Made by a program: the position numbers and the translations under genes. 64,000 bases of DNA. Source: Podarcis muralis (lineage: Eukaryota). The notes beneath the pieces were generated by a model. It did no database searches, had not been told where the DNA came from, and saw nothing but the letters and a program-made list of their open reading frames with translations. The stretch is from NCBI RefSeq assembly GCF_964188315.1, contig NC_135667.1, forward strand, positions 7,936,001 to 8,000,000, written 5' to 3'. Shown piece by piece: positions 3,368 through 61,800 of the stretch; positions within the stretch are counted from its first letter, which is position 1; each line of letters opens with the position of its first letter.

Positions 3368-4387
3368 TATCTGGTGCTGAACTTGTACTTCCTCAACCAA
3401 TAAGTGAGCTGAAACACAGATGTCCTTTGAAATCCACCCTTTTCTGATTTTTGTGATGCTTTTCTTCAAACCCAAAAGTTTACACTTAAAGTTGGGGAAA
3501 TGGCATACTAAGAAAACACAAAATTTACAGATTCAGCTCTCTCTACTGCAGAGCTGTTCATATTACATGACAAGATTCTAGAGCCCAGCAATGTCAGATT
3601 CCAGGCCCACATTCAGCCTGAGTCAGCTGTGTATAGACTTCCATGGGATTGGGATCTCTAAGAATCTATACTGGGACTGCTGCTTTTTCACTTATTCATA
3701 AATGTCCTGGAGTTAGCAGTGAACAGTGAGGTGGCCAGTTTTGTGTATCATGCCAAATTATTTAGGGTTATAAGCAAATCAAAAGGATCTCCCCCAACTG
3801 GATGGTGGTGAAAGGCACTAGCAGAGGCTAGTGTCTTTAAGAAATATGGTTTATGTTACACACATTCCATGGAGGGAGTGCAGAACATTATGCTTCAAAA
3901 GTGTCTCTCATTGCTCCTTTCAAGGTTGTGTTGAGAGTAGCAGTCAGTCATGGATTCTGGTCTCTCAGCGCAACCTCCTCCAACCAGAACTGCACGGAAT
4001 TCTGCCTACTTCCTCCTTTTTGTTCCCAGAACACCTTTAGATTTCAAAAGGGCAAGTTTTCCTTTGACATCACGCACCCCCCACCATCTTGGCAACCTGC
4101 CAATTCTTCTGTCTCTTTCCACTGCTTGTGGCGGTGGGGGGGGGGGAGTGCTTTTGCATTGCTAATGACTCTTAATGACTCAGTACTTGGATCTCCATTG
4201 TTCCTTTATGTCTCTGCATTTAGCCAGGCCACTTTGCATAAACTAATCCAGGAATTTCTTGTCTGGCACAATTCTGCAGCTTGTATTTTCCCTTCATATC
4301 CTAAATACCATCTTAATACTACTTTTTATTAATTTCTACCATTCTCTAGCAGACTCTGGTACCCTAGATCTATGGCAGTATTATCTA

Positions 4388-4745
4388 AGGTAAGGTAAAG
4401 GTACCCCTGCCCATACGGGCCAGTCTTGACAGAATCTAGGGTTGTGCGCCCATCTCACTCTATAGGCCGGGGGCCAGCGCTGTCCGCAGACACTTCCGGG
4501 TCACATAGCCAGCGTGACAGCTGCATCTGGTGAGCCAGCGCAGCACACGGAACGCCGTTTACCTTCCCGCCAGTAAGCGGTCCCTATTTATCTACTTGCA
4601 CCCGGGGGTGCTTTCGAACTGCTAGGTTGGCAGGCGCTGGGACCGAGCGACAGGAGCGCACCCCGCCGCGGGGATTTGAACCGCCGACCTTTCGATCGGC
4701 AAGTCCTAGGCGCTGAGGCTTTTACCCACAGCGCCACCCGCGTCC
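4388..4745 (-). mobile_element. Full-length Sauria SINE (different subfamily)
   Basis: Reverse-strand head ggacgcgggtggcgctgtggg and (acctt)n tail. 15-bp TSD tggcagtattatcta at 4373-4387 and 4746-4760. Confidence 0.92.
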
Positions 4746-5948: not shown

Positions 5949-5954
5949 TTTATT
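5949..5954 (-). terminator. Candidate polyadenylation signal (AATAAA) of the giant SPATA31-like gene
   Basis: tttatt on + strand, about 310 nt downstream of the TGA stop at 6264-6262. Confidence 0.5.
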
Positions 5955-6261: not shown

Positions 6262-9200
6262 TCACTCAACTGCTGCTCCATCTTTGCTGCTTGTCCCGGT
6301 GCTTTCTGGACTTTTTAAATTTCTGCTTGACCTGCTGCTTGAACTCGGGTCCTTGCTGCTTGACCTGTTTCTTGACCGGCTGCTCAATCTCGGATTTCTA
6401 CTGCTTGAACTTGGGTCCTTGCTTCTTCCCCGGCTTCTTGACCTGCTGCTTGAATTTCGGCCCTTGCTGCTTCCCCGGCTTCTTGACCAGCTGCTGAATC
6501 TTACATTTCTGCTACTTGCCCTGCTCCTTGTCCGGCTGCTTGATCTTGGTTCCCTACTGCTTGACCTGCTTCTCGATCCACTGCTTGATTTTTTATCCCT
6601 GCTGCTTGCTCTGAGCTTTGACATTATGCTCTGCTTCCAGCTCCTGAAACTTATTCTCCCTTTTCTGGGTTTAGATTCATGATCCCATCGGACTGATCCC
6701 CTTTCTTTTTTCTCAGGGAGCCTTGTTTCACCAGCACCCCCACTCTGCTTCCTCTTGTACAACACGCTTTGAGTCATCTTCCTTTCACTTTTCTTCCTAA
6801 ATTTGGACTGGGCCAAATCCTTTCTCTCTCTCTGACTTTCTCCAGGGTGGTTTCCCATGCCGCTTGTTGCATGGCCAATGCCGGCGCCTCGTTTCTTTGA
6901 CTTCCCTTCTGAAATGACCCCCGGCCTTTCAGTATTCTGCATCCAGATATTCATCCCATCCCTCAGATGCATTTTTCTCTCCAGGATTTTACCAAGTATA
7001 GACAGTTTCCCATCTGTTTTCACAGTGTGTTTTGAAGATATGCCACCTACAGAGTGAGGGTGGGAGCCTTTTTGCACCGGCTGCTTGTCCATCCCATGTT
7101 CTAACCTGGGGGCCTCTTCCCCTCTTGTTGTCTTAGCTACCTGTTTGCTTTCATGTTTGGTTGATAACTCTTTTTCTCCAATAGTTTCTTTATGGGATGC
7201 CTTTCCTCTCCCACCCAAAATTTCTTCACCATTTCTGTCTCTTACTTCTCCCTCTCCATCTCTTATTTCTCCTTCTCCATCTCTTACTTCTCCTTCTCCT
7301 TCTCTTACTTCTCCTTCTCCTTCTCTTACTTCTCCTTCTCCATCTCTTACTTCTCCTTCTCTTACTTCTCCTTCTCCATCTCTTACTTCTCCTTCTCTTT
7401 CACCTCCTCCATCTCTTACTTCTTCTGCTTCTCCTCTTTCTTCCTCCTCATCCTTCCTCCCAGCTCCTTGGTGTTCCCCACCTCCAGGATCTATTGTGGA
7501 TGCTTCTCCACCAGCCTTTCCTTCTCCTTCCCTGTCATCCCCCAAGATCTCTGTCTGTTCAAAATCACGATTTTCCTCCCAGAAGGCCACTCTTTTGTGG
7601 GATACAGAGAGTGGCCTGGAGAGATCCAGAGCTTCAGTCATTTCATCTGCAACTGACTGAGGTGCACGGAGGTGTTCAAATTGTTCAGAAACTGCTTGCC
7701 TTGCCACATCAAACACCTTTGTTTTGCTTAGGCTGGCCCTTTCATCTGAGGTCTCTGAGGAAGGCACAACATCCTCTGGAGAAACTTGGGGTGCTCCTGC
7801 TGTCAGAGAATCTGCATATCTCAGGCTTCTGGGCTCTACCATGGGCATCTCCTCTGCATCTTCACTACTGACTCCTTCCTCCTTTCTCACACACGAGCTC
7901 TCCTTGCCTATTTCTTCGCCACCATCCCAGTCTCCGACTCTCTCCAGTTCACATTCTGTGCTGTACTCAGAAGATGAATAGGCACCACCTTCCTCCCTTT
8001 CTTTCCCCATATTATCACTTGTCTGTAGCAGGGAACCATCTGTGGGCTGCATTTGGAATTCAACTTCTGTGTTTGCAGAATCTTGATTTTGAGATAAAGG
8101 TGACACCTGCTGGTTGGATTGTTCTTGATCTTGGGAGTCTTCACTTGAGGTCTCCCTATTCTCAGAGACTTGGATACCTTGGTGCTCCATGGGGTCCTCA
8201 CTTTTGGGGGTGGGTGGGGGAGGTTTCAGGTTACAGCAAGGGGATTCAGAGGACCACCCTTTTAGCTGTCCGGGTGCTTGGCCCCCTTTGTCACTGCTGG
8301 TGGCTGTATCTTCAATAATTTGGTTGGTTATTTGCTTCCTTTCCTCACTGTCACAGCTTTGTTTGTCCCATTCTGCCTGGTGCTGTTGATCTGCCTGGCT
8401 ATAATGCACAGGGTCCACCACATGCTCATGGAAACATTGAGAGTCAAGGGTATGGGGTGGCGGTGTGGTGGGATCCAAGGCTTGCTGGGAGACAAGAGTG
8501 TTGTACTGTTGAGTGTCATCTGCCTTCAAAGGCCCAAAATATGCCTGGGAAAATTCATGTTCTGAGAGTGAAGCATCCTTCATACATTCACCTAAGGATG
8601 AACCAGAGACTTGGGATTCAATATTATGTGATATCTGAGAAGTGGCATCTGCCTCTGCCTCTTGTGAGAGGGAAGGATCTTTATTATCTCCTGAGGATGA
8701 AGAATGGATCTGGAGTTCGGTATTCAATGATGGCTGAGAAGAGGAGTCAGCCTTGCCTTCCTTTGAGAGGGAAGTATTCTTATCTCTGTCTCCTGAGGAT
8801 GAATCAGAGTCCTGGCATTCAATATTAGCTGATGTCTGAACAGAAAAATCCACCTCGGCTTCCTTTGAAATGGAAGAATCTTTTCTACTTTCTCCTGGGA
8901 ATGAAACAGAGTCCTGGGGCCCATTATTCTCTGATATCTGAGAAAAGGACCCTGCCTCTGTCTCCTTTCCATTTTCCTGGGAATTTTCTTGCTGCTCTTG
9001 CCTCCACCTTTGCTCTGCAACTAATTGTAATGATGAAGCTGAGCCTTTTGTGGATGTTGATGAATGACATGAGCAGGGACAGTTGAATATCTCACAAGAC
9101 TCCTCTGCCTTGCCAGGAATTTGTGGATACTGTGCAGCATGATGTAGATTCAGTGTAACTATCTGCAGTGCACTCACTTGCGGTGCTTCTCTTTCACCCT

Positions 9201-12200
9201 CTGAGCTGCTGCTTGTCCCTTGGATTACTGTGAAATGCTGAACTTTTGTAAGAGGATAGAGAGATCCACTATCCTTTTCGGCATCTGGCCAGGAAACCAT
9301 CCTATGCTGTATTTTCCAAAACAGCTCTGAGCTGTATGTGGGTTGATCTTCTGACCCTGAGCTGGCTTCCTTTTCTGCTCCTGTTTGAAAAGGAGTGTTT
9401 GGCACTTGGAGGGTCTGAGCACCAGAATAAGTCAAAGGCTCCTCCTTCTCCATTTCATCAGCTTCTGGGATAAAGTCCCTTGTTGACTTCTGAGCCAGGT
9501 TAGGGAGGTGCCACTGGTGCTCTATGTTGAGGTTCTTGGTGTGTTTTTCCAGGTGTTCTTTTGATCTTGAGTGTAAGAAATGTGAGTGCTGGGAAGAAAC
9601 AGGAACCTCTGTTGTCGTAGGCCATTCCTTGGCACCAGCTCTCCATTCATCAATAAAGTTATTTTGTCTCCTTCCAGCAGTGCTCACTCCCACTGAAGTT
9701 TGGGGGCTCTCCTGTGGCTCCAAGGGGGGTGGAGCAAATGCACGCACCGATTTCTGAATAATGGCTGGCAAGCCCCACTGATGCTGGATCTTCTTGTGCT
9801 GGATGTGGACTTCCAGAACATCTTGAGCACCATCAGCGAGGAAAGGCAACTCTGCCACACAGTCTATAAAATGGGTAATAGATGAGGTTCTTGCCAGAAG
9901 TCTCTCCTCCTCATTCTCCCCCAGAAGTTGGGTGTGAGAGTCTTGATAAAATGTAGAGTTGTGGGGATGAGTTTGAGGCCTGATTTCCTCAAACTGATGT
10001 GACACAGGAGGTAGAAATGCTCTAAGCATATTTTGAGCATGTTTTGGAAGCCCCCATCTATGCTTTGCAGTCATGCTCCTAACATGAGCATCTAGACACT
10101 CTGTTGTGTCTGGACTGAGGAATGAGAGAGTCGGAGTAATAATGTATACTTCCCCTCTGTCCCATGAAACTCCGTTGGCTATATTCTCTCCTTCCATGTA
10201 TGGTGGGTGCTTCTCTGATTCAATGAGAAATGGAGCAAAAGCATGCAGGGATTTCAACACAGAGGAAGGTAAGCCCCATGCATGATGGAGTTTCTTGTGC
10301 TGAATGTGTGATTCCAGAAGGTTCTGGGCCTCATCCGTGAGGAAAGGAAGAGTCACCTCAGGCAATAAGAAAGTAGTCGCTTGAGCCAATACAGGTGTAG
10401 CTGCTGCCTTTTGAACATAATTGAGCTTCCTCTCCAGTTTCTCTACTGCCATTTTTCTTACCTTGGCATCTTCTAGAAAGTCTTCCTTGTCATCTTCTGA
10501 ATGGGAATCAGCTTCAGGCTCTTGGGAGAATTTGCGATGAAAAGGTGTTAGAGACCTTGCTTCACCCAACTCAGATTGGGAAAATGCTCTGGGATTCCGA
10601 AATGCCCTCAGTGATTGTGAAACCTGTTCTGGAAGGTGCCACCTATGGTGTGTAGTCATACGCCTCACATGGGCATCCAGGTTCTCCTGTAACTCTTGGC
10701 TGAGGAACGTGAGACTCCTTGAAATAATATTGGCTTCTTCTTTCTCCCATGGGTATCTCATGGTCATGCTTTGCCTGTGTTTCTCTGTCTCAAGATGAAA
10801 TGGAGCAAAGGCATGCAAGGACTTCAGCACATTGGAGGGTAGGCCCCAAACATGGTGGAGTTTCTTGCGCAGGATGTGAAATTCAAGAAATTCCCAGGTC
10901 TCATTGGTTAAGAAACCAAGTTTCACTCCAGGCCACAAGAAAGCAGTTACATTCAAGTTCATAGTTGAGTCTGCTCCCTGTTTCAATTGGTTGAAGACCT
11001 CCATATTCCTTATTGTCCTTCTTTTGACCATGGAGTCTTTCATGTCTTCATTGTCACCTTCTGTTTCAGAGTAATCTCTAGCCACCTGGGAGGATTTGTA
11101 GTGAGAAGGAGAAAAATCCTGTGCATTCTCCAATTCCAATCCTAAAGCATGTCTGGGATGTAGAAATACTCCCAGTGATTGCTGAACCCGCATTGGAAGG
11201 CCCCATCTGTGCTTAGCCACCCTCCTCCTCTCATGAGCTTCCAGGCGATCTTTTGTGTCTGGACTTGGGAAGAAGGGATCCCAGACAATCTCTTTCACTT
11301 CTACCTTATCCCCTTGGCGTGCCTTAGTCATTCTCTTGCCTAAGCTTTCCACATGCGTCTGAGACCCATGGAGAAATGGGGCAAAGGCATGCATGGACTT
11401 CAGCACAGAGGAGGGTAGCCCCCATGTGTGCTGGAGTTTCTTCTGTCGGATATGGAATTCCAGAAGATCTTGCGCTTCATCTGTGAGGAAAGCAAGCTTT
11501 GCCCCAGGCCATAAGAAAGTAGTTTCTTCAAAGTTCACAGTTGTGGTTGCTCCCTGCTTTCCTTGTGGAAAGCCCCATCCTTTCTCTCCTGTTCTTCTGT
11601 TGCCCATTTCCTCCTCCACCAAGTCTTCCTTGTCCTCTTCTGAATGGGAATCAGCTTCAGGCTCTTGGGGAAATTTGCCATGAAAAGGTGTTAGAGACCT
11701 TGCTTCACCCAACTCACATTGGGGAAAGGGTCTGAGATGCCGAAATGCCCTCAGTGATTGTGAAACCTGTTCTGGAAGTTGCCACCTATGGTGTGTAGTC
11801 ATACGCCTCACATGGGCATCCAGGTTCTCCTGTAAGTCTTGGCTGAGGAACGTGAGACTCCTTGAAATAATATGGGCTTCTTCTTTCTCCCATGGGTATC
11901 TCATGGTCATGCTTTGCTTGTGTTTCTCTGTCTCAAGGTGAAATGGAGCAAAGCCATGCAAGGACTTCAGCACATTGGAGGGTAGGCCCCAAGCATGGTG
12001 GAGTTTCTTGCGCAGGATGTGAAATTCAAGAAATTCCCAGGTCTCATTGGTTAAGAAACCAAGTTTGACTCCAGGCCACAGGAAAGCAGTTACATTCAAG
12101 TTCATAGATGAGTCTGCTCCCTGTTTCAATTGGTTGAAGACCTCTATTTTCTCTGTTGTCCTTCTCTTGACTTTGAATTCTTTCATTTCTTCATTGTCAC

Positions 12201-15200
12201 CTTCTGTTTCAGAGGAATCTCTAGCCACCTGGGAGGATTTGTAGTGAGGAGAAAAATACTGTTCATTCTCCGATTCCAATCCTAAAGCATGTCTGGGATG
12301 TAGAAATACTCCCAGTGATTGCTGAACCCGCATTGGAAGGCCCCATCTGTGCTTAGCCACCCTCCTCCTCTCATGAGCTTCCAGGCGATCTTTGGTGTCT
12401 GGACTTGGGAAGAAGAGATCCCAAACAATCTCTTTCACTTCTACCTTATCCCATTGGTTTGCCTTAGTCATTCTCTTGCCTAAGCTTTCCACATGCGTCT
12501 GAGACCCATGGAGAAATGGGGCAAAGGCATGCATGGACTTCAACACAGAGGAGGGTAGGCCCCATGTGTGCTGGAGTTTCTTCTGTCGGATATGGAATTC
12601 CAGAAGATCTTGTGCTTCATCTGTGAGGAAGGCAAGCTTTGCCCCAGGCCATAAGAAAGTAGTTTCTTCAAAGTTCACAGCTGTGGTTGCTCCCTGCTTT
12701 CCTTGAGGGAAGCCCCATCCCTTCCCTGCTGTCCTTCTGTTGCCCATTTCCTCCTTCACCAAGTCCTCATTGTCATCTTCAGTCTGGGAATCAGCTGTAG
12801 GCACTTGGAAGAATTTGCCTAGGGAAGGCTGCACATTATCCTGACGAGATCCGAAAGGTTGTCTGGGAAGCAGAAATCCTCCCAGTGATTGCTGAACCCG
12901 CTTTGGAAGGCCCCATCTGTGCTGTACCACCCTCTTCCTCATGTGAGCTTCCAGGTGCTCTTTTGTGTTGGGACTCAGGAAGGAGAGACTTGGGATAACA
13001 ACTTGTACCTCCATCCAATTGCATTGCGTTGCCGTTGTCATGTTCCTTCTTGTGTGTTGCATCTGCTTCTGTATCTCAAGGGGGTATGGGCCAAAGGCCT
13101 TCAATGACTTCAACACAGAGGATGGTAGGCCCCATGCATGCTGGATCTTCTTATGCTGGATGTGGAATTCCAACAGGTCCTGGGTGACCCTTGTGAGAAA
13201 ATTTAGGTTCACCTCAAGGCTTGATAAAGCAGTTACTTTAAAGTTTGATTGTACAGTTACTCCCTCCTTCCCTTGGGGAAAAACCCATCCCTTTCCTGCT
13301 GCTCTTCTTCTGTTGTCCATTTCCTCCTCCACCAAGACTTCATTTTCATCTTCAGTCTGGGAATCAACAGTATGCTCTTGGAGAAATTTGCCATGAAAAG
13401 GTGTTAGAGACCTTGCTTCACCCAACTCAGATTGGGAAAATGCTCTGGGATTCCGAAATGCCCTCAGTGATTGTGAAACCTGTTCTGGAAGTTGCCACCT
13501 ATGGTGTGTAGTCATACGCCTCACATGGGCATCCAGGTTCTCCTGTAACTCTTGGCTGAGGAACGTGAGACTCCTTGAAATAATAGGGGCTTCTTCTATC
13601 TCCCATGGGTATCTCATGGTCATGCTTTGCTTGTGTTTCTCTGTCTCAAGGTGAAATGGAGCAAAGGCATGCAGGGACTTCAGCACATTGGAGGGTAGGC
13701 CCCAAGTATGGTGGAGTTTTTTGCGCAGGATGTGAAATTCGAGAATTTCACAGGTCTCATTGTTTAAGAAACCAAGTTTCACTCCAGGCGATAAGAAAGC
13801 AGTTACATTCAAGTTCATAGTTGAGTCTGCTCCCTGTTTCAATTGGTTGAAGACCTCCATTTTCTCTGTTGTCCTTCTCTTGACTTTGAATTCTTTCATG
13901 TCTTCATTGTCACCTTCTGTTTCAGAGGAATCTCTAGCCACCTGGGAGGATTTGTAGTGAGGAGAAAAATACTGTGCATTCTCCAATTCCAATCCTAAAG
14001 CATGTCTGGGATGTAGAAATACTCCGAGTGATTGCTGAACCCTCATCGGAAGGCCCCATCTGTGCTTAACCACCCTCCTCCTCTCATGAGCTTCCAGGCG
14101 ATCTATGGTGTCTGGACTTGGGAAGAAGAGATCCCAGACAATCTCTTTCACTTCTACCTTAACCCATTGGTTTGCCTTAGTCATTCTCTTGTCTAAGCTT
14201 TGCTCATGCGGGCAAAGCTTAGACAAGAGAAATGGGGCAAAGGCATGCATGGACTTCAACACAGAGGAGGGTAGGCCCCATGTGTGCTGGAGTTTCTTCT
14301 GTCGGATATGGAATTCCAGAAGATCTTGTGCTTCATCTGTGAGGAAGGCTAGCTTTGCCCCAGGCCATAAGAAAGTAGTTTCTTCAAAGTTCACAGCTGT
14401 GGTTGCTCCCTGCTTTCCTTGAGGGAAGCCCCATCCCTTCCCTGCTGTCCTTCTGTTGCCCATTTCCTCCTTCACCAAGTCTTCCTTGTCATCTTCAGTT
14501 TGGGAATCAGCTGTAGGGACTTGGAAGAATTTGCTGGGGTAAGGCCGCACATTGTCCTGCCCTGATCCGAAAGGTTGTCTGTGACGGAGAAGTCCTCCCA
14601 GTGATTGCTGAACCCGTTTTGGAAGGCCCCACCTGTGCTGTATCACCCTCTTCCTCATGTGAGCTTCCAGGTGCTCTTTTGTGTTGGGACTCAGGAAGGA
14701 GAGACTTGGGATAATTACTTGTACCTGCATCCCATTGCATTGGATTGCCGTCGTCATGTTCCTTCCTGTGTGTTGCATCTGTATCTCAAGGGGGTATGGG
14801 CCAAAGGCCTTCAATGACCTCAACACAGAGGATGGTAGGCCCCATGCATGCTGGATCTTCTTATGCTGGATGTGGAATTCCAACAGGTCCTGGGTGACCC
14901 TTGTGAGAAAATTTAGGTTCACCTCAAGGCTTAAGAAAGCAGTTACTTTAAAGTTTGATGGCACAGTTCCTGCCCTCTCTTGCTTTCCTTTTACCCTTCT
15001 CTTGGCTTCTTCTGATGAGTGTTCATTGTCATCGTCAGTCTGGGAACCATTAGTATGCCCTTGGGAAGATTTGTATTGACGAGATAACGGATCCAGTTCA
15101 GATTGAGGAAGTGATCTGGGCCGTTGAAATGCCCTCAGTGATTCCTGTACCCGCTTTGGTATTTCCCATCTGTGCTTTGTGGTTATATTCCTCACGTGAG

Positions 15201-18200
15201 CCTCTAGTCTCTCCTTCATATCCGAGCTGATGAAAGCAAGATTACTGATTATCGTTCTCACTTCTACCCAATCCCAGGGGTGAATATTTGTTATGTTTTC
15301 TCCCCGATGATTCTCTGGATCAGGGGGAAATAGGGCAAAGGCACATAAGGACTTCAGGACAGTGGAGGGAAGACCCCACATGTGCTGGATTTTCTTCTTT
15401 CCAATGTGGAATTCCAGAAGATTCCAAGCTTCCTCTGTGAGCAAAGGTGGCTTCATCTCAGATGATTCAAACGTAGTCAGTTCCACACCTGTGCCTGTGG
15501 TTGCCACTCCATGTCCTTGGTGGATAGTAGCTTTTGGATGACCCCTGGCTCCTGCTTTGGGTGTGAGTTGCTTCAAAGGCTCTCTTCCCTCAGAAAGAGT
15601 AGGGATTTCATCTTGCTCGTAGGACTTACGATGATCTTCTTTGAAATGGGACGCAAGTTGAGTGGGAGCAATTGCCCTCAGAGAATCCTGAATCAGTTTG
15701 GGAAGTCCCCACTGGTGCTCCATGGCCCAGCTCCTCACGTGGGCTTCTATGCCATTCTTGACATCTGGACTTACAACACGCAGGGCCTTTTGAGGGGGGA
15801 TGGTCTCTAACACAGATTGTGGTACATGGGCAGTCGCTTTCTCTTGATATCCCAGTTTCTCAACAGTGACATGTGTTGATGCGCCTGCTTTTTTACTCCT
15901 CTGTAGCTCAGGTGGAAGAGGGACAAAGGCATGCAAAGATTTCTGCACTAGAGATGGCAGCCCCCACTCATGCTGGAGTCTTTTGCGCTGTATGTGAAGT
16001 TCCAAAAGATCGCAGGCTTCCTTTGTAAGAAATGTTGGCACTGGCTCCTGAAATACTTCCGTCAATTGGAATTTAGCCTCCATATTTTTTTTCTTGAGAT
16101 GGTCTTCCAAAAGATTCATATTTGAAGCAGGGGTCACTGATTTCCCTGAAGAGGGTTTGTGTGCAGTGTCTGCAAACATCGGCTGTGGGGATCTAGTCAT
16201 AAGCAACTCCCTTGCTTCATTCTGGAATATTGGGGGTTCCAGCTCCTGGACCCTAATCTTCACTTGGCTGATTTGGGATGAGGAACATCTTTCCTGGAAC
16301 ACTGTAGCCAAAGGTTCCAAGTGCATGCTGGGCAACTCCCCCAAGAAAGTGAAATGTTCCCTTGTTGAAGATGAGGTGACAACATTTGGAATATCTCTCA
16401 ACTGCATCTCCCTGTGCTTCTTGGCCAAGTGGTGGTTCATCTTGTCCAAACTATGGGGCTTCAGCATAGAAAGAACTTGAGCTGACTGTGGGGAGGCAGG
16501 CATCAACCCAAATGTTTTTCTGTTGCTTACTTCTTGGTGTACAGTACTCAATCCTGGGTGCTTGTATGTTATCCAATAGCAAGGGCAGTAGAAGTAGCGG
16601 TCTTCCACTGCTGCCCTGGTTATGGCATCTTTCCCATTCAAGATTTCACTCTGTTGACTAGGTTGGTGCTCTGGAAACTCATGCCTGATGTTCAGCTCCC
16701 CCTTATCCACTGCTTCACCCTCCACCAAGGGCAGAAATGTGCTTCTGGGCTTCACTTGGCTATAAAGAGGGGCAAACTTCTGGAGGGAGTCTTCAAGTGT
16801 GATCTTGAAGCTTCCCATGGGTTGGAGATCAGATTCTGTGGACCTTCTCCTGAGGCTAGGGTGATCTGTAGAGGCAGCTGATGATTCAGAAAAAGCTCCC
16901 TCAGGGACTTCTCCTGCCTCCATATCCTGGTGTGGGCTGACCATTTGCTGTGCCCTGTAAGCCTTGGGTCCATGTGTGAAGATGTTCTCACCCACAAATG
17001 TTGCCTGCCTTGCCTCTACCAGCTCTTCTCTGGCTACTGGGATGGGAGAGGAGAATCTGCCCAGAGAGTCACAGCTTTTATTTTGGTACTCTGTAATTTG
17101 TGGTTCCAAGGGACCTGTCCCAAACGCAGGGCGGAAAAGCTTGATAGATTCCAAAACCCTCTTAGGCAACTTCCATTGTCTCTGTAGCTTCATCCTTTGA
17201 ATGTGGAAATCCAACTGACTGTAGGTGCTTTGGGGAAGGAATGACGGTTTCTGTAGTAGAATGTAGACATGGGCTTTCGCCCTTTGGAGACTTGGCAGTG
17301 GGGGAGCCTGTGATTTGAAGCCATGCAAGGATTTCTGAATAAGACTAGGCAAGCCCCATTCATGTTGTAGCTTCTTTTTTCTAATGTGCAGTTCCAGATT
17401 CTCTCTGACCTGAGCATAGAGAAACTCTGTCCGCACTTCTAAGAACTCAACAGCAACTTCTCTAGCTCTAGGAAACGTGGGCAGCAGTTTGGGCTTCATT
17501 GCACTCATGGCCAAGGTTGGGGAAACGTCCGGCCATTTTTCATCCAAGTGGAATATCTTATTCTCTGTTGCTTCAGACTGAAGTGTGGGGTACATCAAAA
17601 GCTGACTTGGCATTGTCCTCCTCCCTATCCTAGTTCCATCCTGTTTCCCTGCAACAGTCACCATCTCTGGGGAAAGTAGCCTGAGGGACTCAAGGACCCT
17701 TGGGGGTAAGTGCCATCGGTGAAGCATGATTCTTTTCAGCAGATTCTGCTCTAGTTCTTGGATGATGGCATCGCTAAGGAAGGAGAGCTCAGCCAGAAGA
17801 ACACTCACCTCCATGTGCTGCAATGTCCGGTGCTGATGCAATTGGGGGACAACGGGGAAAACAGAATGGAGAGATCTCTGGACAAGACTTGGCAACCCCC
17901 AATCATGCTGCAACCTCTTTTTTCTCACGTGCCATTCCAGATCCTCCCAAGTCCCCTGCTCAATGAATGGGATCTCTTGTATCAGTGTGGGCTCGTCCCA
18001 TGGGTGCTGCACCTTCTTTTTAAGCACATGGGAATCCAAAGACTGCTCCTCATTAGCAGGAAGAAAACTTGTCCTTGCTTGGACAAATGCAGCAGTGTGC
18101 TGCGACCGAAGTAGCATCTCATGTCTGGCCTCAAAGGACTTCTTCTCAGTTATAGTCTGGGGGGTTGCTTTGGAAGGAGGGGGAGATTTGAGGGCTGTTT

Positions 18201-19415
18201 CTCTGGCTGTGGATTCCAAATGTAGAACATGCCTATGAAGTTTCCCTTCCCTCTCACCCTTGACGACTCCTCCTCGGCCTCCTTTCCTGTGTGCAGATGA
18301 TGCTATATCTGTGGTGAGGGGATAATCTAGCTTCATATGCTTGAGGGCCTCTTGGACTTGCTTTGGCAACACCCGGCATTGCATGTGAATCATCTTTTTC
18401 ATGTGTTTCTCTAGTGTCCTCCTCTTTGCCCCACTCATGAAAGGAAGAAGCCGAGGCCTCATCAACACAGTATGCTCCCTCTTTGGACGGTACGGGCAAG
18501 TGAAATCCATACCAAGAGGCAAAAAGGCCCTGAGTGACCTGAGGACGACTGATGGAAGACCCAATTTGTGTTGAATACTTTTCACAACCAAATGCCACTC
18601 CAAGGTCTTTCTCACAGTCTTAGCTACAAAGGGAGTGTCCTCAGTAGCAAATTCAACCCTAGGAGATTTGATATTTGCTTGGGAGATCACAGGTAAAGAA
18701 CTGGGGAAATGCCTTGTTCCTTTATGGTGGAATCTCATGCCCTGGTGGTTCTTCCTCTCACTCAGAGAGGACCCTTCATTTTTCTTATGCCTCAAAGGCA
18801 TGTGGCTCTTCTTGCTGAAATTTGATAGCTCGGACAGGTCAGAAGAGGGACTGTAATCTTCCCAACTATTGTAAGACAGCTCTGATGATGTGCTAGAAGA
18901 GAGGCAAAAGGGATCGCTCATTTCCCCACTGCTGTCCTCAGAGCTGTCATAACATTTATTTATACTAAACATGGAATGGCTGTCAGAACAGGTGGGACTT
19001 ATGTCATTCTCCCTGGAGATGGGAACATCTTGCTGAGCATAATGGAGTGGTTTCTCCTTCTGCCTCTTGCCTTTGGGAATGTGTTGCTCCTTTCTGGATG
19101 AAGGGGTTATTTCTGGGCCCAATTCTGGATGGCCACAGTTTGTGGCAGGTTTACTGCTGCTCCATGGAAAAATTGTGTCATCTCTTTGAGCAGAAATGGC
19201 TGGTAGGCTGGAGCTCCCCACATAAGAGGCAATGGGAAGTGATGGCATTTGCAAAGCAGAAAGCCCAGGTTTTGATCCATAGACACGCAGCACTTCCTCA
19301 GCCTCCTTGGCTGCCCTGTCACATATGGCGCAGGTCACGTTGTCACATAGCAATCTGCGTATGGAGGAATGGCAACTGCCTCCATTTTGTGGGTCTGTCT
19401 CCTGGTGTTTGGTAC
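6262..19415 (-). CDS. Giant terminal exon (13,154 nt, 4,383 aa + stop) of a SPATA31/FAM75/FAM205-family (spermatogenesis-associated 31-like) protein, copy B
   Basis: Uninterrupted ORF. Acceptor ttcatttgtcttacag|GT at 19416/19415 in phase 1, matching exon 2. Starts with SIRRLLCDNVTCAICDRAAKEAEEVL (resembles the conserved RxLLCxxxxCxxC motif of SPATA31 N-termini). About 30 copies of LE-x-H-(I/V)-xx-K/R-xx-QH-x-WGLP-xx-V-xx-S, typical of FAM75 domains. Three-exon layout (TM exon, tiny exon, huge exon) fits the family. Family assignment is by motif recognition. Confidence 0.8.
6265..6620 (-). repeat. Ser/Arg-rich imperfect tandem repeat encoding the protein C-terminus (RSSS/RSRS)
   Basis: Recurring ctgctgcttgaa/ctgcttgacc units on + strand. 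Protein SSSRSRSRGRSKDPSSSSRNPRLSSRSR. Confidence 0.85.
7238..7424 (-). repeat. 21-bp coding minisatellite (EVRDGEG / EVREGEG heptapeptide, about 8-9 units)
   Basis: Unit tctcttacttctccttctcca repeated, with one 15-bp variant; frame preserved. Confidence 0.9.
10390..14956 (-). repeat. In-exon higher-order tandem repeat, eight ~570-bp (190-aa) monomers in order A-B-C-A-B-C-B-C, with diverged monomers on both sides (to about 9700 and 15460)
   Basis: Anchor ga(g/t)ggtaggcccc at 14831, 14267, 13691, 13121, 12551, 11978, 11411, 10835. Spacings 564, 576, 570, 570, 573, 567, 576, all multiples of 3. Confidence 0.9.
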
Positions 19416-19842
19416 CTGTAAGACAAATGAAGGCACTGGTGACCTTTCCTTCACCTCCAGGATGGTATGGAGCCAATTGGTATAGAGACAATTATATTTT
19501 GTCAGGAGCTGGCTGGATGAGGAGGAGTGGCAGGCACTGGAGGAGGAAGAGGAGTGTGGGGGGAGCATACCACCCACGTGTGCCACGCCCCTGCGGGCAG
19601 TATGTCCTGCCCCCAGGACATGGCCTGCCCTGCCCTGCCTGCTCTCCACCCCCCGGTGTCAGAGCATGAAGCTCCGCCACTGGTGGCAAGAGCCTCTTGC
19701 CCAGAAGCTCCCCAGGGAAGACAGAGAAGACGAGGACTTAGACCCTGGGTCCTGGTGGTGGGAGGTGCTAGAAGTAGGAGGGTGGAGTGATCAAGGGAGG
19801 GAGCGGGTCAGAGGAAGAAGGCCCTTCCATAATTTCTGCCCC

Positions 19843-22028: not shown

Positions 22029-22283
22029 CATCGGTGTGCCAGTCTCAGCGGGGAACCAACTGCCCAGCTGTTCCTCCAGGGAGTGGGGATTCTCAGTGAC
22101 TTCAGGTTCAACTGAAAAGGACAAGATGCTTCTCTATGCTTGGTCAAGTCTCTTGTACTATGCAAAGGTGCTACATTGGATCATTTGGAAGAGGCTGATG
22201 AATAGAGCCAGGGCTAGAGTAGTGTACAAGTTGAAGTAGCAGTCCAAAAGGGGAAAGTGATTGATGAGGGAAATCAGCTCCAT
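22029..22283 (-). pseudogene. SPATA31-like copy B, exon 1, with two in-frame TAG stops (codons 42 and 50); the last codon is an in-frame ATG
   Basis: Same length (255 nt) and donor (ATG|GTGAGT) as copy A. TAG at 22160-22158 and 22136-22134 where copy A has TGG. Confidence 0.8.
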
Positions 22284-23824: not shown

Positions 23825-26800
23825 TTATCTCCTCATTAGCTGTTCTTTGCTGTTCAGCTCAGGCCTCAGCAAAATAATGTAACATTTTGGGGAAAAAATA
23901 CAACCCAACAAACCAGCGCTGGAGGCCAAGATGGAGAAGATCTCCACAGCCACCATATATTTCCCCTTAGTGCTCAGGTAGGTTGGAACAAACGACAACC
24001 AAACACTGCAAAACATCAACATGCTGAAGGTGATGAACTTGGCTTCATTAAAAGTGTCTGGCAGCTTCCTAGCCAGGAATGCCACAGTGAAGCTGATGAT
24101 GGCTAGAAGTCCCATGTAGCCCAGGACAAGATAAAACATGGTGACAGAGCCTTCATTACATTTTGATATGATCTCTTGAGTCAGTGACTGCGTGTCCAAA
24201 TCTGGAAAGGAAGGAGTGGTAGACAACCAAATGGCACAAATACCAACTTGAATGTGGGAGCAGGAAAACACAATGGCGTTGGTCAATCTTTTTCCTACCC
24301 ACTTCCTCATGCTGGACCCTGGCCTGGTGGCCATGAAAGCAACAACCACTGTCATGGTTTTGGCCAACACACAAGAAACAGCCACTGAGAAAATGATGCC
24401 AAAAGTGGGTTGTCTGAGAAGGCAGGTCACTTTCCCAGGTTGGCCAAGGAAGAGCAAAGAAGAGAGGAAGCAGAGCAGAAGGGATATGAGGAGAGCATAG
24501 GTGAGGTCCCTATTGTTGGCTTTGACTATGGGGGTATCTCTGTGCTTAATAAAAGTTATTAGTGCCAAAGCTGTGATCAGGGAAAAAGAAACAGTAACTG
24601 ACGTTAAACTGATCCCTAAAGGTTCTTCATAAGAAAGATAGCAGATTGTTTTGGGGATGCAGTGATCTTGGTTGTTGCTTGGATACTGATAATCTGGGCA
24701 GTTCACACAGTTAATCATGTCTGGAAAAAGAAGAAGAAGAAAGGCTCATTTCAATAGAAATTCACATCTGATGAAGAGTACATTTTGGCTTCTGAGTTTG
24801 TTACTATAGGTACCGTATTTATCACTGCTATTTTACTGTATTTTATTGTAGTGTTCTGATGTAATGGTTTCTTCTTTTTGCATGGTTGTTTTACTGATTC
24901 TGGGTTGTCAGCTACCCTATGTTCCAGAAGAGAGGAATGGTGGAATACAAAAATATTTAAGACATAAATAAAATAAACTTTATTTGTGGAAGCAAGATGG
25001 AAGCTGCTGCTCACATACATTATCATCTAACTGCTGCTTGTATATATAAGATTGCTATATTCCCGTTGAGCTCTTTTCATTTGGGGGCTTTTCTTTGATT
25101 TTTTAATAAAAAGAGCCCAACTTGCCATACGTCCGGGTCTTCCGATTAAGGTTGTGTGCAGTGTTGTCTGCTGAACACCTTCGTTATGTTTTGAAGGTTC
25201 CTGCAGAAGACTGCTTACATTATGAGTAGTGCCTTCCAGAAGCCTTTGGTCTACACTTCCCATCAGTCTGGCTAGAATAGCCAATGTTAGGAATGATTGG
25301 AGCCTAGCATTCCTGTGCTTATTACATATCTTGCCCGTGAATTAAGTTGTCTATTACCCCATGTCTCGTTTCTTCATTATTGCTGCAGGGGCAAATGATT
25401 ATTTGCTGCTTGAACGAAAATTAAGTGAGGGGATAATTGCAATACATCACCTACCCTTCTGGTTTGAAATCTTCCCTTCTGGACATGGAACACAATCATA
25501 GCAGCAAAATTTATCCTTTTCCCTCTTTTTCTTCTGATAACCAGGGCGGCAAGAGTTACTACACACAGAAAGGGGTGGCACCTTTCAGTACACAGCATTG
25601 GAGTTTAGGGTAGAAGAAAGAAGAAATGTTTTGTTGCACATAAGCTGACGTACAAAATAAGTAAATAAGCAAACTGTTGACATGGAATAATGAACTTAAA
25701 TGGAACATTACACATTCATGCATACACCCGCCCATCTCCTGCTAATGCTTTCCAGAATATATTGTTTTTGCCATCTATTGCTTGGCTGACATAGGGGCAT
25801 AGGAAGTTGCTAAATACTGAGTCAAACCCTTGGTTCCTCCAGCTTTGTATTGTTCACAGTGACAGGCAACAGCTCTCCAAGATTTCAGACAGGGACATCT
25901 CCTGGCCCTACCTGGAATTGCAAGCAATTTAAACTGGGACCTGCATGCAAAGCAGATTCTCTATTACCAAACTATGGCTAGGGATGCAATAAGGCAGTCA
26001 TTTCCATTCCTTTCTATCCTATCTCACAATCGGAACTATTTCCATTCCACTGCAGTTTGGTTTCCACAAAACACCATGTTATTTGTCACACTGTCCACTA
26101 TTTAATGTAATTCACATAATTATTGACGCTAGTTACGAATTTAACATAAGTAAACACTTTTAATTCCACACCATTAATTTCAGTGCAAGGCACACACAAT
26201 CTAAATGGAGTGGGGCAGAAGTAATCAATCACATATTGCTTCCGAGTAGAAAACAAAACAAAACAAATATTATAAAAGCCTGGATTATTTTCCATTTGGA
26301 TGTAGGATAAATTAGTCCAGATTGGTTATTTCCACTTCTGTTTTAATTTTCATCAGTATTTTCTTACAACTCTAGCTGAGGGCCCTTCTCCAAAATGTGG
26401 GTACCAGAGAAGTTATTTTAATAACTTAATCCAGTGTCTCATTCCATAGGAAGAGGGGTGTCTATTGGTGTCTCGTTTTCTTTTGTAAAAAAAAACAAAA
26501 AAAACTGGTTCAAAATCCCCTATCAAAGTTTATTTTTATAGAGGATATTATTTTTTATTTCACTTGAACAGAATATTGCACATTTCCCACTGTTAGGCAC
26601 TTTAAGGTTACAGCTCTCTTTGTTTTTCTTAATGCAATAGGTGGTATTGTCTTTATTATAGAGACAGATCATTCATCGTCAACTGATACAGAAGAGAGAA
26701 TTCTTAGGTCTTAAATCAATATCCTAGCACCCATACTTGGTTAAATACACTGGGCCACACAATTAAATCATCATCAAGGATTAGTTCTTCTCCTTCAGGA

Positions 26801-29800
26801 GCTCTGGGCTCCACACTTCCGACTTTAACTCTCTGGAAGGAGTTGTTTGGGAAAGTGGCTATGCTCATGATGTCAAATCCACCTTCCATTTCTCTTTTGT
26901 CATTAAAGGACACTGTTTCTTGAGCTGAGTTGTTGAATGTTATGTCTTGAAGAATCAGGTGGAGCTAGTTGAAAGAGAAAAAGAAACAAGGGGAGAGCAA
27001 AATAATAGACACGTATCGCTGGAAATTCATGACATTGAATTCATGAGTTCATGAAAATTCCCAATGAATTGAATGGGTCTGGATAGGCGTGCCTAAACAA
27101 AATTGTTTTAAGCAGGTGCCATAGTTAGCAAAGTGATGGTACCTGCCAAATGTTATGTTATGTCCTGATAGGGTCTCACTTCTTTTACAACCGCAGTTTC
27201 CCAGTGAAAAGCAAGAGATGCCCTACATACAGTGCATTGAAGTAACCTAATCTTGAAGTAACCAATGCCTGAACAATTGTGGTGAAGCTCTCCTGGTCTA
27301 GGCACAGTCTTAGCTGATGCACCAGTTACAGCTGGTAAAAGGTGCTTCTACCCACTGAGGTATCTGGGTCTCCAGAGACAAAGCTGGATCCAGACACTCA
27401 TCACCTCTGCCTGCATACCTGCTCATTCGGGGGGATTGTAAACCCATCAAGGGCAGGCAATCGACCAATTTCCCATAGAGGGTAGCCTAGGGCTGCCAGA
27501 TGCCGGCACAGACATCACTTAAAAGGGCAGTGCGTTTGGAGAAGGGAAGAGAGCCATTCGCAGCCACGCCTACATTGGGGAAGTGCTGGGGCGTGGGCGG
27601 GGCAGTGTGGGGCTCTCCTCTTCTCTTATGCTCGCTCTGTGCATCATGTTTTTCATAGCAAATCATTCTAGAACTTCATTTTTCTTGGAGCTTTTGCCCA
27701 CCACAAAAAAACTCAACAAGCGTAACAAAATAACCACCTTAACAACTTTTCTGTCTGGATTTTCAATTTTGGAAATATGGAAACTGGTAGCCACTCACCC
27801 ACATTGCATCCTTCTTATGTTATTTTCCCATCCCACCACAGGGCTCTCATGACCTCTCCTTATCCATGTCATGGAGAAATAAAGTTCAGTGTCATCAGCA
27901 TACTGATAGCATCTTGCCTCCAATCTCAATACCATTGAGGATAAAACAGTGCCCCATGCCAACCCCCAGCTTAAATGCCTGGGCCCCACAAAACACTCAT
28001 GCAATTCTACTCTCTAGATAGGACCAGTAACCAAATGCCCCCAGTTCCCATTCCATGTAGCTGGCCCTGGTCAATGGTATCAAAAGCTGCAGAAAGCTCA
28101 AGCAACAGGAGCAAAGTCACATTCCCCTTGTCCCGTCTTCCATAAAGGTCACCCAACAGGATAACTCAGTTTGGCAAACACCTTCTCTTGTCATGCAGCA
28201 AGACCTAGCCTGAAAATGAAGCTATTTTTTTCAGTGAGGGATGCTCAAAAGTTACGGCTTCCCTTCTCCAAGCCCCAAGAAAAGGAGAAAATGTGAACCC
28301 ACAAATTTCCATCAATGTCTTGGTGTGTCTAACATAATTTTACCATTAGGAAAAAGGCATATTGTATTAGCTTTTTCATGGCAAGTAAAAACACAATTAT
28401 ATAGTGTAGACATTACCTGCCATGGGTGGTTTGCAACTCTTTCAGCCTCCACAGCTGCTCTGAGTTTGGGTGTAGATGAGTCCATGGCATGCAGTGCATG
28501 TGCAGCAGCATAGACAGCATTATAGATGCTATAGCTGTGACCAGTCATGCACATTTCAAAAAGAGGCGCAGGAAGGCTCTCCAGTCTTGCCTCTCCAGTA
28601 CATGGTTCATTGACCTCTTTTGGACAATGAAATGAGCAGTCAAAGACTTGCTCCCATATATCCTTGATAAAACCATCTCCTTCTGCCCAGCAAGGCTCTA
28701 TAGTCTGAAGGAATGTCTTGAATGCTGGTGGTTCATGTGAATGAATTGTGAATGAAATAGCCCCTTGGAACACTTGCAGATCTGAGCCTCTTTGAAGGCT
28801 AGTTAATGCAAAATCTATCTGGGCTGTCAGAATCCACACCTTTTCGTGAGATGTGTCATTATTACGTTCAGGATTTCCCAGAAGAATAAAATAGCTCAGC
28901 CACATAATGGACAGTGTTTCTCCATAGAGAACAAATGTGTTGACTTTGTTAAATGTGAAAGGTTTATAAATACTCTGGACCTGGTTGTTAATTTCAAACA
29001 TATCATTTAACCGGGCTTGTTGTGTAATCCTTTCTGTGAAAGCTGAACAGATTCCATGCTGGGAAAGCAATGGCTCCAGGGTCTGCAAGAAACGCTCTCC
29101 ACTCTCATCGTTGACAGTGAAGAACCCAACCCATGTCCATCTGAAATGCTGAAGTAAGCGGACAATCCCAATGTACTGGCGGGCTTCGTTGGGGACCATA
29201 TTGTAGAAGGAGTGGGACTGCATTGCATAACTCTCCTCTGGGGCAAATGAGCCATAAGTGAGCTGAAATAAAATGTAGCGATTTAAGAGATTTTTTTAGG
29301 AGGAATGCCTGAATGAATCTGCATATGAGGGCTTTCAGTCTGGGCAATGAGTATTTTTCCAGCTAAACCTGATATGAATTCAGAAAACCTGAATTTTAAA
29401 GACGTATTTTGTCTGAATTTTCTCAGCCTGTGAAAATGTAATATTTTTGAACTAGTCATTGGAAAGATATCTGGTAGAAATTATTGACTGTATATTACCC
29501 AGATATGTATTTTAATATGTAAATATATTTATAATAACTGATTTTATGCATACTTTGGTTTTTTATCAACTAACTTTTTAAATCATTAAATCTAATGTAT
29601 ATTTTATATAAACTGCATTGAGATATTTATGAGTAAGCATACAAACTGCATTAAATAAATATATGAATTTCATTACATAAATAAATATATTTTCCCATCC
29701 TGTTCTCTTCCTTGGGCTAAGTCCCATTTCACTTTTGAATATCAGGCAAATTAAGTGTAGCTTTCCTGCCTTTCTGAACAACAAAAACCACTTCCAGAAT

Positions 29801-58811: not shown

Positions 58812-61800
58812 TTGCTGAAAGAGCATTCGAACTCTCTCTGCAGTGTGGTGCTAAAATTCTACCAGCACATCCTGGCCTTGGTGTTTGCCGTAAATGAGAT
58901 CAACGAGAATCCCAGCATCTTGCCCAATGTCACCCTTGGGTTCCACATCTATGACAGCTACTATGACGCAAGGATGACTTATCAGACCACTATGGACCTG
59001 CTCTTCAAATTCAGAAGATTTGTCCCCAATTACAAATGCAACAACCAGAAAAACCTCATAGCTGTCATTGGGGGACTTGGTTCTGATGTCTCCTTCCATA
59101 TGGCAGAACTCTTAAGCCTATACAAGTATCCACAGGTAGGATTTATCCATGGATGAAGGGGGGATAGTCACTAAGTTCATTCTTCTCCTGGAATGCTGAG
59201 AGTAATTTTGAGGGTCAGAATAAGCAGAGGAATGGCTGTGAGAAATCCAAAAACTTACCTAATGCTGAAGTCCCCCTGAAGTTTAGTGGTGCCGTTTCCC
59301 AAGTGTGCAGCAGCTGCAATATCCTCTTTTTAAAGAAGGAAAGGAAATGAACTGTGACTTCATTTTTAAAGATGCTAGTCCTCAGACCCTCTCATATACC
59401 AGTTAATAAATAATACATCCCCGCAGGCTACATTTCAGCAATCTTTCAGGGAGTTTTGGCCTGCTCCCAAAATTTATCTTATCACCTACAACAGTCTTCT
59501 TAAGGAGCTTTTCCATTGCCTTGATAAACATTCCTGTTTTGCACAGGTCGACAGGCTCAGATGCGCCTCTTAAAATATTTGCATTTCCCCCATCAGTTCA
59601 CTTATGGTTCATTCACCTCTGGGCACACAAGACAATTGCCTTCCTTTTACCGGATGGTCCCAAGTGAAGCAAACCAGTACATTGGGATCATTAACTTGCT
59701 GAAGCATTTTGGATGGACCTGGATTGGGCTCTTTGCTGTGGACGATGACAGTGGAGAACAATTCCTACAGACCCTGGAGCCATTGCTTTCTCAGAATGGA
59801 ATCTGTTCAGCCTTCACACAAAGGATCACCAACCAACATGATTTAACGAATTTCAGTGCATTTTACGTATCAGCATCTATTATTTATCCAGCGTTCTCAG
59901 AGAGCAAAGTCAGTATCTTTGTCATCTATGGAGATTCTATGACCATTCTATGGGTGAATGCATATGTGCTCCTAGGATTTCCTAGCTACAATGAGGGTAC
60001 CTCACTTGGAAAGGTGTGGGTTATGACAGCCCAGCTGGATTTTACCTTAACAGGCGTTCAGAACGTATGGGATTTTCAATTGTTTGAAGGGGCCCTGTCC
60101 TTCACAATTCACTCTGCTGAGATTCAAGGATTCAAGGATTTTCTTCAGATCGTAAAACCTGGCTGGAATCAAGAAGATGGCTTTCTCAAGGACTTCTGGG
60201 AGCAAGCATTTAACTGTTTATTTCCAGACCCCCAGGAGCTGATAGAGGTTGGTGAAACTTGTACTGGAGAGGAGAGGTTGGAGAATCTTCCTGCATCTAT
60301 ATTTGAAATGCACATGACTGGTCACAGCTACAGTATCTATAATGCCGTCTATGCTGTGGCACATGCTTTGCATGCCATACAGTCATCTAGATACAAACAC
60401 AGTCCAATAATGAGTGGCAAAAGTCTTCAAGATCTCCAGCCTTGGAAGGTAGTGTATTCATAATGAAATAATCTCATTTTCATGAAGCGAATAGAACAAA
60501 ATCATGCACGTTCCAATTTTATTCTTTAAAACAACAATAATATTAATACCATATCTTAAGTTCCCAGGGTGGGTTACCACAATAAAGCAAAAAAACAGTT
60601 TAAAACAAGTTACAATAACCAACATAAGGTGGGTCTTAAAAATATACCCCTCAGAGAACTTTCTTTATGTATGCTACAACAGCAGCAAGAATACTTATTG
60701 CAAAGTATTGGAAGACACAAGATTTACCCACTTTGGAAGAATGGCAGATGAAGGTGATGGATTACATGGAATTGGCGGAAATGACTGGCAGAATCCGAGA
60801 TCAGGGAGAAGAGTCGGTAGAAGAAGACTGGAAGAAATTTAAAGATTATTTACAGAAATATTGTAAAATTAATGAATGTTAGAATGATGTTGGATTGAAA
60901 TTAAGTGGTTTCTAGCTGTAATGGTATAACAGAGCATGAAAAAAATGGTTTTTTACAAGTAAAAATTTAATGATGTAACAACTTAAGATTAAAGATCTGG
61001 GTAGAATAAAGAGGGAAAGAAACTGCTAAGTTAATAAATTGAACTGGAATACAAAAAAGGGAGGTATGAGGAGGTCTGGGAAACAAGTTAATGAAAAATA
61101 ATGTGATGAAAAGATTGATTGTTTTTAACTATTTTTATTTTGTATTTTGTATTTTTTCTTTTTCTATTTTGTAATGTAAAACNNNNNNNNNNNNNNNNNN
61201 NNNNNNNNNNNNNNNNNNNNNNNNNNNNNNNNNNNNNNNNNNNNNNNNNNNNNNNNNNNNNNNNNNNNNNNNNNNNNNNNNNNNNNNNNNNNNNNNNNNN
61301 NNNNNNNNNNNNNNNNNNNNNNNNNNNNNNNNNNNNNNNNNNNNNNNNNNNNGGTAAAGAGGTGCGTCTTTTCGTCAGAAGCTATGTATGTCCCCCAGGT
61401 GTATCTCTGTGGAGAGGGAGTTCCACAGCTTAGGGGCTGCCACAGAAAATGCCCTCTCCTGGGCCGCAAACCCCCCTCAAGTGTCTGAGAGGAGAGGAAC
61501 TAGCAAGATGGCCTCCTCTGCTGATCTTAGCAGTAGGGAAGGAGGCGGTAATTCAGATATGTCTGACTTGGGTCATTTAGGACTTTAAACATTCGTGTTT
61601 AACTAGCAACCAGTAACGCTGCTGTAAAACAGGTTATATTAGTGTCTGGTAGGAAAGGAACGAATAAGAGGCAATCATCTGCTGATCTCAGCAACCAAGA
61701 GGGTCCGTAGGCAGTATTTCAGATATTTGGGAATATTTAAACTCACATGACACTTTAAATGCATATGTGAGCACCTTGAATTGGGGCCAGAGATGAACTG

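Follow-up and report, generated by a model that had tools for sequence, protein, structure and literature searches.

Male mice depend on SPATA31/FAM205 proteins for fertility, and in primates these gene families rank among the fastest to evolve; to our knowledge the FAM75 domain is without a known structure or mechanism. Mammalian members have been assigned functions in spermatid adhesion or in the acrosome, with binding of beta-actin and syntaxin 1 (PMC5338094, PMC13423385); FAM205A/SPATA31F1 is acrosomal and knockout of Fam205a1 results in infertility (PMC13423385), while testis- or spermatid-specific expression is known for mammalian SPATA31/FAM75 members only (PMC5338094, PMC13423385). A preprint describes a repeat of the family motif that has 2–6 units in the paralogues of human and one in mouse (doi 10.1101/2020.02.14.947036). 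Mammalian SPATA31 proteins (Spata31/VAD1.3/AEP1, SPATA31A-E) share a FAM75 domain, a cysteine motif of the form LLC..x.C..C in the DUF4599 region and a large final exon, and we observed all three in LOC144325216, a gene on the minus strand of a 64,000-nucleotide stretch of DNA (the window; NC_135667.1, positions 7,936,001 to 8,000,000) from the lizard Podarcis muralis. The lizard protein differs from the mammalian proteins in its disabled transmembrane exon and its long tail with an arginine-serine (RS) rich end. It also differs in size: the two mammalian SPATA31D1 proteins examined, one from a rodent and one from rabbit, have one strong pair of motifs with degenerate remnants in 1,400–2,160 residues, whereas 15 pairs are spread over about 4,400 residues in the lizard. 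Our preferred reading, somewhat more probable than not, is that LOC144325216 is a real and selectively maintained member of the SPATA31/FAM75 family, likely a flexible multivalent scaffold of spermatids made without a transmembrane segment.

The open frame on the minus strand (19491..6262) has 4,409 codons, and the remaining frames across 6262–19415 are riddled with stops; simple arithmetic puts the probability of a frame this long without a stop at about (61/64)^4409, or roughly e^-212. A polypyrimidine-AG acceptor, ttcatttgtcttacag with G as the next base (19417–19416), sets the start of the large exon at 19415. The resulting exon of 13,154 nt opens with 2 nt that complete a split codon, continues with 4,383 sense codons and closes with a stop. 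As in the SPATA31/FAM75 family, one large terminal exon carries the bulk of the protein. A single giant exon of 13.15 kb with 4,383 open codons had been proposed in an earlier note on this DNA, in which no strand was given, and it was confirmed here. The reptile origin proposed in the same note also held, with 0 mismatches in 28.4 kb compared with Podarcis muralis GCA_964188315.1 (OZ076966.1).

To count the repeated motifs we used a hidden Markov model (HMM) built from the sequence itself, which identified 31 motifs between residues 285 and 3347 where a regular expression caught only 20. Two types, A (LEFHI..KK.QH.WGLPS.VLKS) and B (LE/DAH.R....HRWGLP.RVQQS), alternate strictly, with 61–88 residues from A to B and approximately 110–120 residues from B to the next A. 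A second HMM, of the whole pair, recovered 15 complete pairs (each with E<1e-31) and one half-unit. The motifs are basic (net charge +4.7 per 100 residues, 7.5% His) and the linkers between pairs, of about 70 residues, are mildly acidic (-3.5 per 100 residues) and each contains a Glu/Asp patch. Motif number, pairing and charge pattern all agree with the earlier description of about 30 copies in alternating pairs separated by acidic linkers.

Comparison with Pfam placed the protein in the FAM75 family (PF14650), as the earlier note had supposed; it scored 451.1 bits over 17 stretches, where the cutoff is 24 (E=5.6e-135). When the protein was cut in pieces, 8 separate sub-pieces scored 44–104 bits with the same profile. 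Every A+B pair mapped to the same part of the FAM75 model, positions ~140–245 of 382, indicating that a single A+B pair forms the conserved core of this domain. Residues 493–611 of Dipodomys SPATA31D1 correspond to the same A/B pair (E=7e-26 to the lizard pair profile), and the suggestion that the paired motif is the basic unit of the domain was thus upheld. The match to DUF4599 (PF15371) was below threshold (20.2 bits, cutoff 34, E=7.7e-4) and covered model positions 42–68 of 88 only; the remainder of this domain would fall in upstream exons, and the cysteine motif itself is common to homologues that do carry PF15371. Tandem or segmental gene duplication and fast evolution, further marks of the family, are also seen at this locus, where a tandem paralogue is present and the orthologue within the same genus is only 95% identical.

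That orthologue, LOC128400584 of P. raffonei (XP_053218865/6), is annotated as isoforms X1 and X2 of 4,376 and 4,365 residues. Its 15 pairs match those of LOC144325216 in number and order, and all gaps between the two proteins are in frame. For P. muralis the NCBI entry is an 'uncharacterized protein LOC144325216' of 3,668 residues which is 100% identical to the open reading frame (ORF) of the window over all that it covers. The model starts at Met364, 363 codons into the open frame and 339 into the exon, and omits residues 1627–2004 by means of a 1,134-nt GT..AG intron whose donor and acceptor lie at an equal position in two B motifs. The P. raffonei gene is annotated without this intron. The intron is probably an artefact of repeat alignment, or at best an alternative isoform, and of the 4,403 residues reconstructed below from homology the RefSeq model lacks 741. 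Repeats in register can in this way give rise to spurious introns and shortened models in annotation.

These data also bear on whether the repeat count could be an assembly artefact. Tandem repeats of 1.7 kb are error-prone and the NCBI model skips 1,134 nt, so that an inflated or collapsed array might be suspected. However, the copies differ by 5–16% at the nucleotide level and are easily told apart, the independent assembly of P. raffonei gave the same pairs in the same order, and there are no N bases in the giant-exon region, the array included. We reject inflation and consider an artefact of either kind scarcely credible.

Constraint was measured in two ways, between the two species at the protein level and, as the ratio of nonsynonymous to synonymous substitution rates (dN/dS), among repeat copies within the window. 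Between P. muralis and P. raffonei 96.2% of motif positions were conserved as compared with 92.6% of inter-motif positions (odds ratio 2.0, p=2e-5). For the A and B copies within the higher-order repeat dN/dS was 0.36–0.55, and comparisons of older units gave 0.4–0.5. Because the frame is open in two species, the motifs are conserved and dN/dS has these values, we conclude that the giant exon is under weak to moderate purifying selection. This is in line with the fast evolution of the SPATA31 family (PMC5338094).

Upstream of the giant exon we identified two further exons. Exon 2 is flanked by ag at its acceptor and gtaag at its donor, and by tblastn it was 100% identical to the N-terminus of P. 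raffonei. Exon 1 corresponds to the ancestral membrane-anchor exon and ends with an ATG codon (22031–22029) followed by the donor GTGAGT. Joining of this ATG to exon 2 and exon 3 gave a protein of 4,403 residues without an internal stop, and the reconstructed start, MKEHVEH..., is the exact start of both P. raffonei isoforms. The earlier note listed an N-terminal transmembrane exon among the features of mammalian members; such an exon is present at this locus but is broken by two in-frame TGG to TAG stops (22160–22158 and 22136–22134) just past the hydrophobic segment. A membrane segment is also absent from both P. raffonei isoform models. Since neither Podarcis model has such a segment, the state without it is probably shared and tolerated. 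With the anchor exon disabled the product would be soluble, and translation would start either at the terminal ATG of exon 1 or at an internal ATG.

The two stops could also be taken as the first sign of a gene that is dying or recently dead, inactivated by loss of the transmembrane exon, with a frame that has simply not yet had the time to acquire stops. Tryptophan is kept at both stop sites in the tandem paralogue, the NCBI model is cut to Met364 with its odd internal intron, and the repeat copies are weakly constrained, all as might be expected of such a gene. Against this, 4,383 codons are intact in P. muralis and the P. raffonei frame is intact at 5% amino-acid divergence, the motifs are significantly better conserved than the linkers, and dN/dS is below 1. 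The lack of a membrane segment in both P. raffonei isoforms also suggests an old, tolerated state. We therefore consider a dying gene quite improbable and retain the reading of a maintained gene.

Structure predictions were made with AlphaFold2 for one 200-residue unit, using an alignment of 130 units, and for a 126-residue core from unit 3, using 140 units including those of fish and mammals. The predicted local distance difference test (pLDDT) score was 64 for the unit and 74 for the core, with predicted template modelling scores (pTM) of 0.27 and 0.28. In both models each motif was predicted as a helix of about 20 residues, a two-residue break at G-L-P and a second helix of 10–12 residues, with local pLDDT of 80–93. 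The spacer between A and B had pLDDT of 47–62 and the linkers were also low. For so small a core, the low pTM means that A and B are not predicted to pack against each other. A Foldseek search of Swiss-Prot models returned only other SPATA31 models, headed by mouse and human SPATA31F1-type proteins, which were non-globular and matched with a template modelling (TM) score below 0.2 and a root-mean-square deviation of about 30 Å. Foldseek against the PDB gave zero matches, and no PDB sequence was significantly matched by the profile.

The earlier note had proposed that the pair is a small folded module, and in its strongest form this would be a compact domain such as a four-helix bundle, with the protein a rigid chain of 15 domains acting as a structural element of sperm. 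The two motifs are invariably found together and duplication has acted on the pair as a unit across >400 million years of divergence, and the predicted helices of both motifs have high local confidence, as a domain of this kind would require. The low pTM of unit and core, the latter obtained even with a short spacer and the broad alignment, the low pLDDT of the spacer, the poor superposition on SPATA31 models and the lack of any PDB fold match do not support it, and we regard a compact domain as unlikely. What was predicted instead are separate helix-kink-helix elements.

From these elements we propose a flexible 'beads-on-a-string' scaffold in which basic helix-kink-helix pairs, hinged at WGLP, would be separated by disordered acidic linkers. 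Each of the conserved helical faces may engage a partner, or may fold when it does so, and the length of the array would then set the valency. By analogy with its mammalian relatives the protein may act in spermatids. A multivalent spermatid scaffold would fit the approximately 30 repeated helical faces, the alternation of basic and acidic blocks and the long disordered tail. For further work, a minimal construct of about 120 residues could serve for structural and binding studies.

The main rival to an acrosomal or cytoskeletal role is a nuclear scaffold associated with chromatin or RNA, in which nucleic acid would be contacted by the basic helices and the RS tail would direct the protein to nuclear speckles; it is suggested by the missing membrane anchor together with the RS-rich C-terminus. 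The last 150 residues (approximately 6265–6700; ORF residues ~4,260–4,409) contain 29 RS/SR dipeptides where the family median is 5, the motifs carry a net positive charge and are rich in His, and nuclear localisation signals and a link to ultraviolet (UV) damage and DNA repair have been reported for human SPATA31A (PMC5338094). The weakest hint is that an HMG-box protein was the best, non-significant match among PDB sequences (E=0.034). However, Pfam revealed no known DNA- or RNA-binding domain, homologues which keep the transmembrane N-terminus have the same motifs, and knockouts of mammalian relatives have acrosomal or adhesion defects (PMC13423385). The RS-like end is strongest in LOC144325216 and its P. 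raffonei orthologue, but RS-rich ends, if weaker, are also found in several further family members including those of Pantherophis and turtle (N-termini not examined). On this evidence we find a nuclear role doubtful, and a spermatid scaffold remains our preferred interpretation.

Several observations weigh against that interpretation. The dN/dS values among copies, 0.4–0.9, amount to weak constraint. The NCBI model begins only at Met364 and exon 1 has two stops; the reconstructed N-terminus is putative, as is translation of the full exon. For tissue and function we argue from distant mammalian relatives, and the sole mammalian match in the sequence search, rodent SPATA31D1, was 38% identical over 8% of the query. 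The failure of AlphaFold2 to pack A against B is also compatible with a folded module, which may need a partner to fold, or with partner-dependent oligomerisation.

To place the array in a wider context the pair profile was searched against 1.84 billion representative proteins, and 373 proteins were matched. The largest numbers of matched stretches were accompanied by great length: 37 in a sturgeon protein of 5,126 residues, 30 in coelacanth (4,716 residues), 27 in catshark (5,132 residues), 26 in skate (4,631 residues) and 20 in pigeon (4,132 residues). Electric ray, chimaera, turtle, newt, axolotl and many squamates were also matched. The proteins of catshark (XP_038674067), coelacanth (XP_014342996), skate, electric ray, chimaera, sturgeon, newt and turtle, of 2,400–5,100 residues, have arrays of the same A/B unit. 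Under a strict criterion of full pairs we counted 19 in sturgeon, 18 in catshark, 12 in coelacanth, 11–15 in squamates, 8 in chimaera, 7 in turtle and 6 in newt, and a single full pair in SPATA31D1 of rabbit and of kangaroo rat. The pigeon protein had no full pair under this criterion, only partial stretches. The earlier note had proposed an amplification of the pair by about 15-fold; the 15 pairs are real, but they are not special to the lizard, given the 6–19 full pairs across non-mammalian jawed vertebrates, and it is the mammalian state of one pair that stands apart. In the sturgeon protein (Acipenser sinensis, with the source flag UNVERIFIED_CONTAM) the 19 pairs follow an exact period of 271 residues and are almost identical, as seen in the three units sampled, and this array is either a very recent amplification or an artefact of assembly or annotation.

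A maximum likelihood tree of 116 units over 127 columns was computed with quick IQ-TREE settings and is rough, with support from the Shimodaira-Hasegawa-like approximate likelihood ratio test (SH-aLRT) only. Units 1, 2, 3, 4, 5 and 15 grouped with squamate or turtle units at corresponding positions, as judged from unit order (support 95, 94, 97, 96, 86 and 92, respectively). Units 6–14 fell in a squamate-only clade (98) composed of species-specific subclades, in which units 6/9, 7/10/12 and 8/11/13 of the window formed clades, and at the nucleotide level the copies of pairs 6–13 were 84–95% identical. One clade only (SH-aLRT 95) joined sauropsid and chondrichthyan units, while the others mostly clustered by lineage. 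The tree thus indicates that the array is old, with its edges kept and its interior turned over by lineage-specific tandem duplication. The array was inherited and not produced by a one-off amplification, and interior units 6–14 grew by lineage-specific tandem duplication of a block of three pairs, 1.7 kb in length. Tandem Repeats Finder, with a longest period of 500, misses this higher-order repeat of 570 residues (1.7 kb) and catches only short repeats in the tail.

The single-pair form of the mammals examined is probably derived. A wider history is plausible if still short of probable: the ancestral SPATA31 of jawed vertebrates would have been a giant array with at least two pair types before the split of cartilaginous and bony vertebrates, mammals would have reduced it to one functional pair, so that the FAM75 domain is that pair plus decayed neighbours, array valency would be the functional parameter that evolves, and the Podarcis lineage would have turned an anchored array into a soluble, RS-tailed one. 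From the lizard protein and its relatives from shark to turtle, the conserved unit appears as a pair of short basic helix-kink-helix motifs. Most vertebrates use it in long arrays of variable length, and the mammalian proteins are recast as reduced forms.

We found no description of non-mammalian FAM75 arrays, or of SPATA31 in lizards or other reptiles, in the searchable literature. LOC144325216 and many giant relatives are already publicly annotated, usually with the label 'uncharacterized' and in some cases as SPATA31F1 or FAM205A, the names given by NCBI to giant squamate paralogues. As far as we know none of the giant FAM75 proteins of non-mammalian gnathostomes has been studied functionally. 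A possible orthology to mammalian SPATA31F1 is hinted at by weak Foldseek matches (E=6e-3, TM score 0.19) and by these automatic names on paralogues; SPATA31F1/FAM205A and the lizard protein share the FAM75 core and differ in array size and in the lack of a transmembrane segment in the latter. The P. muralis protein named SPATA31F1 (XP_077792083.1) lies on a different chromosome-scale record and is about 35% identical to LOC144325216. It has 14 pairs, of which the first and last are positionally orthologous to those of LOC144325216 and the interior units have expanded independently. When the N-terminal 1,150 residues were used as query for relatives of ordinary size, two matches only were obtained. 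Human SPATA31H1 (C2orf16), for which a variant at residue 4789 is listed (PMC13348677), is another very large SPATA31-named protein and was compared by name and size only.

Coordinates of the features of LOC144325216 in the window
Feature	Position	Strand	Evidence
Candidate polyadenylation signal AATAAA, ~310 nt past the stop	5949..5954	-	Pattern search, consensus match only
Giant last exon (exon 3), 4,383 sense codons and stop (6264–6262)	6262..19415	-	ORF list, acceptor, length arithmetic
C-terminal tail, ~1,060 residues, low-complexity, Ser/Glu/Gly-rich	6265..9438	-	Tandem Repeats Finder, composition
Short conserved tail motif LSILGKILERKMHLRDGMNIW, 21 residues	6943..7005	-	blastp of tail against retrieved homologues
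Array of 15 FAM75 core pairs and one half-unit, residues 279–3351	9439..18657	-	Motif and pair HMMs, Pfam FAM75 stretches
Higher-order repeat (A-B-C)(A-B-C)(B-C), pairs 6–13, sub-unit ~190 residues	10354..14919	-	Nucleotide identity, unit tree
Probably artefactual NCBI intron of 1,134 nt, in frame, B motif joined to B motif in register	13480..14613	-	Model protein against window ORF
SPATA31-type N-terminal Cys motif IRRLLCDNVTCAICDRAAKEAEE	19288..19368	-	Sub-threshold Pfam DUF4599; also in N-termini of homologues
Exon 2, 55 nt, encodes KEHVEHRSHLQAAVGKEE and the first base of a Gly codon	21116..21170	-	tblastn of P. raffonei N-terminus, DNA alignment
Exon 1, ancestral transmembrane/signal-anchor exon	22029..22283	-	Translation, paralogue alignment, hydrophobic 19-mer, N-terminus of Lerista homologue

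No Pfam match was found in the C-terminal tail. Tandem Repeats Finder identified a 34-residue repeat at 8591–8941 and the repeat GEGEVRD at 7238–7456. The motif LSILGKILERKMHLRDGMNIW sits in a tail segment which, in overlapping blastp matches, corresponds to the near-C-terminal ends of other squamate homologues; its 21-residue limits are our choice within these matches. The P. muralis protein has an extra extension of approximately 225 residues C-terminal to this motif. On the plus strand, ORFs of 150–224 residues at 7085–7871 lie antisense to the GEGEVRD and low-complexity tail and are probably by-products of purine-rich repeats and not genes. A Logan contig was considered as cDNA evidence and rejected, since by tblastn its N-terminus reads past the acceptor to 19431, and it was read as genomic. 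The sole N run of the window, of 170 bases, is at 61183–61352.

The tandem paralogue lies directly downstream on the minus strand, with exon 1 at 1340–1594 and exon 2 at 378–432. Its exon 1 is intact and its exon 2 has a GC donor instead of GT. The large exon starts just outside the window, on its left, and has an open frame of at least 1,123 residues. Amino-acid identity to LOC144325216 was 44% in the large exon and nucleotide identity was 75–90% in the 5' region; no gene is called for this paralogue in the annotation table of the locus. Upstream of LOC144325216, at approximately 23825–28402 and beyond on the minus strand, the gene table lists a vomeronasal type-2/CaSR-like receptor with Pfam domains ANF_receptor, NCD3G and 7tm_3.

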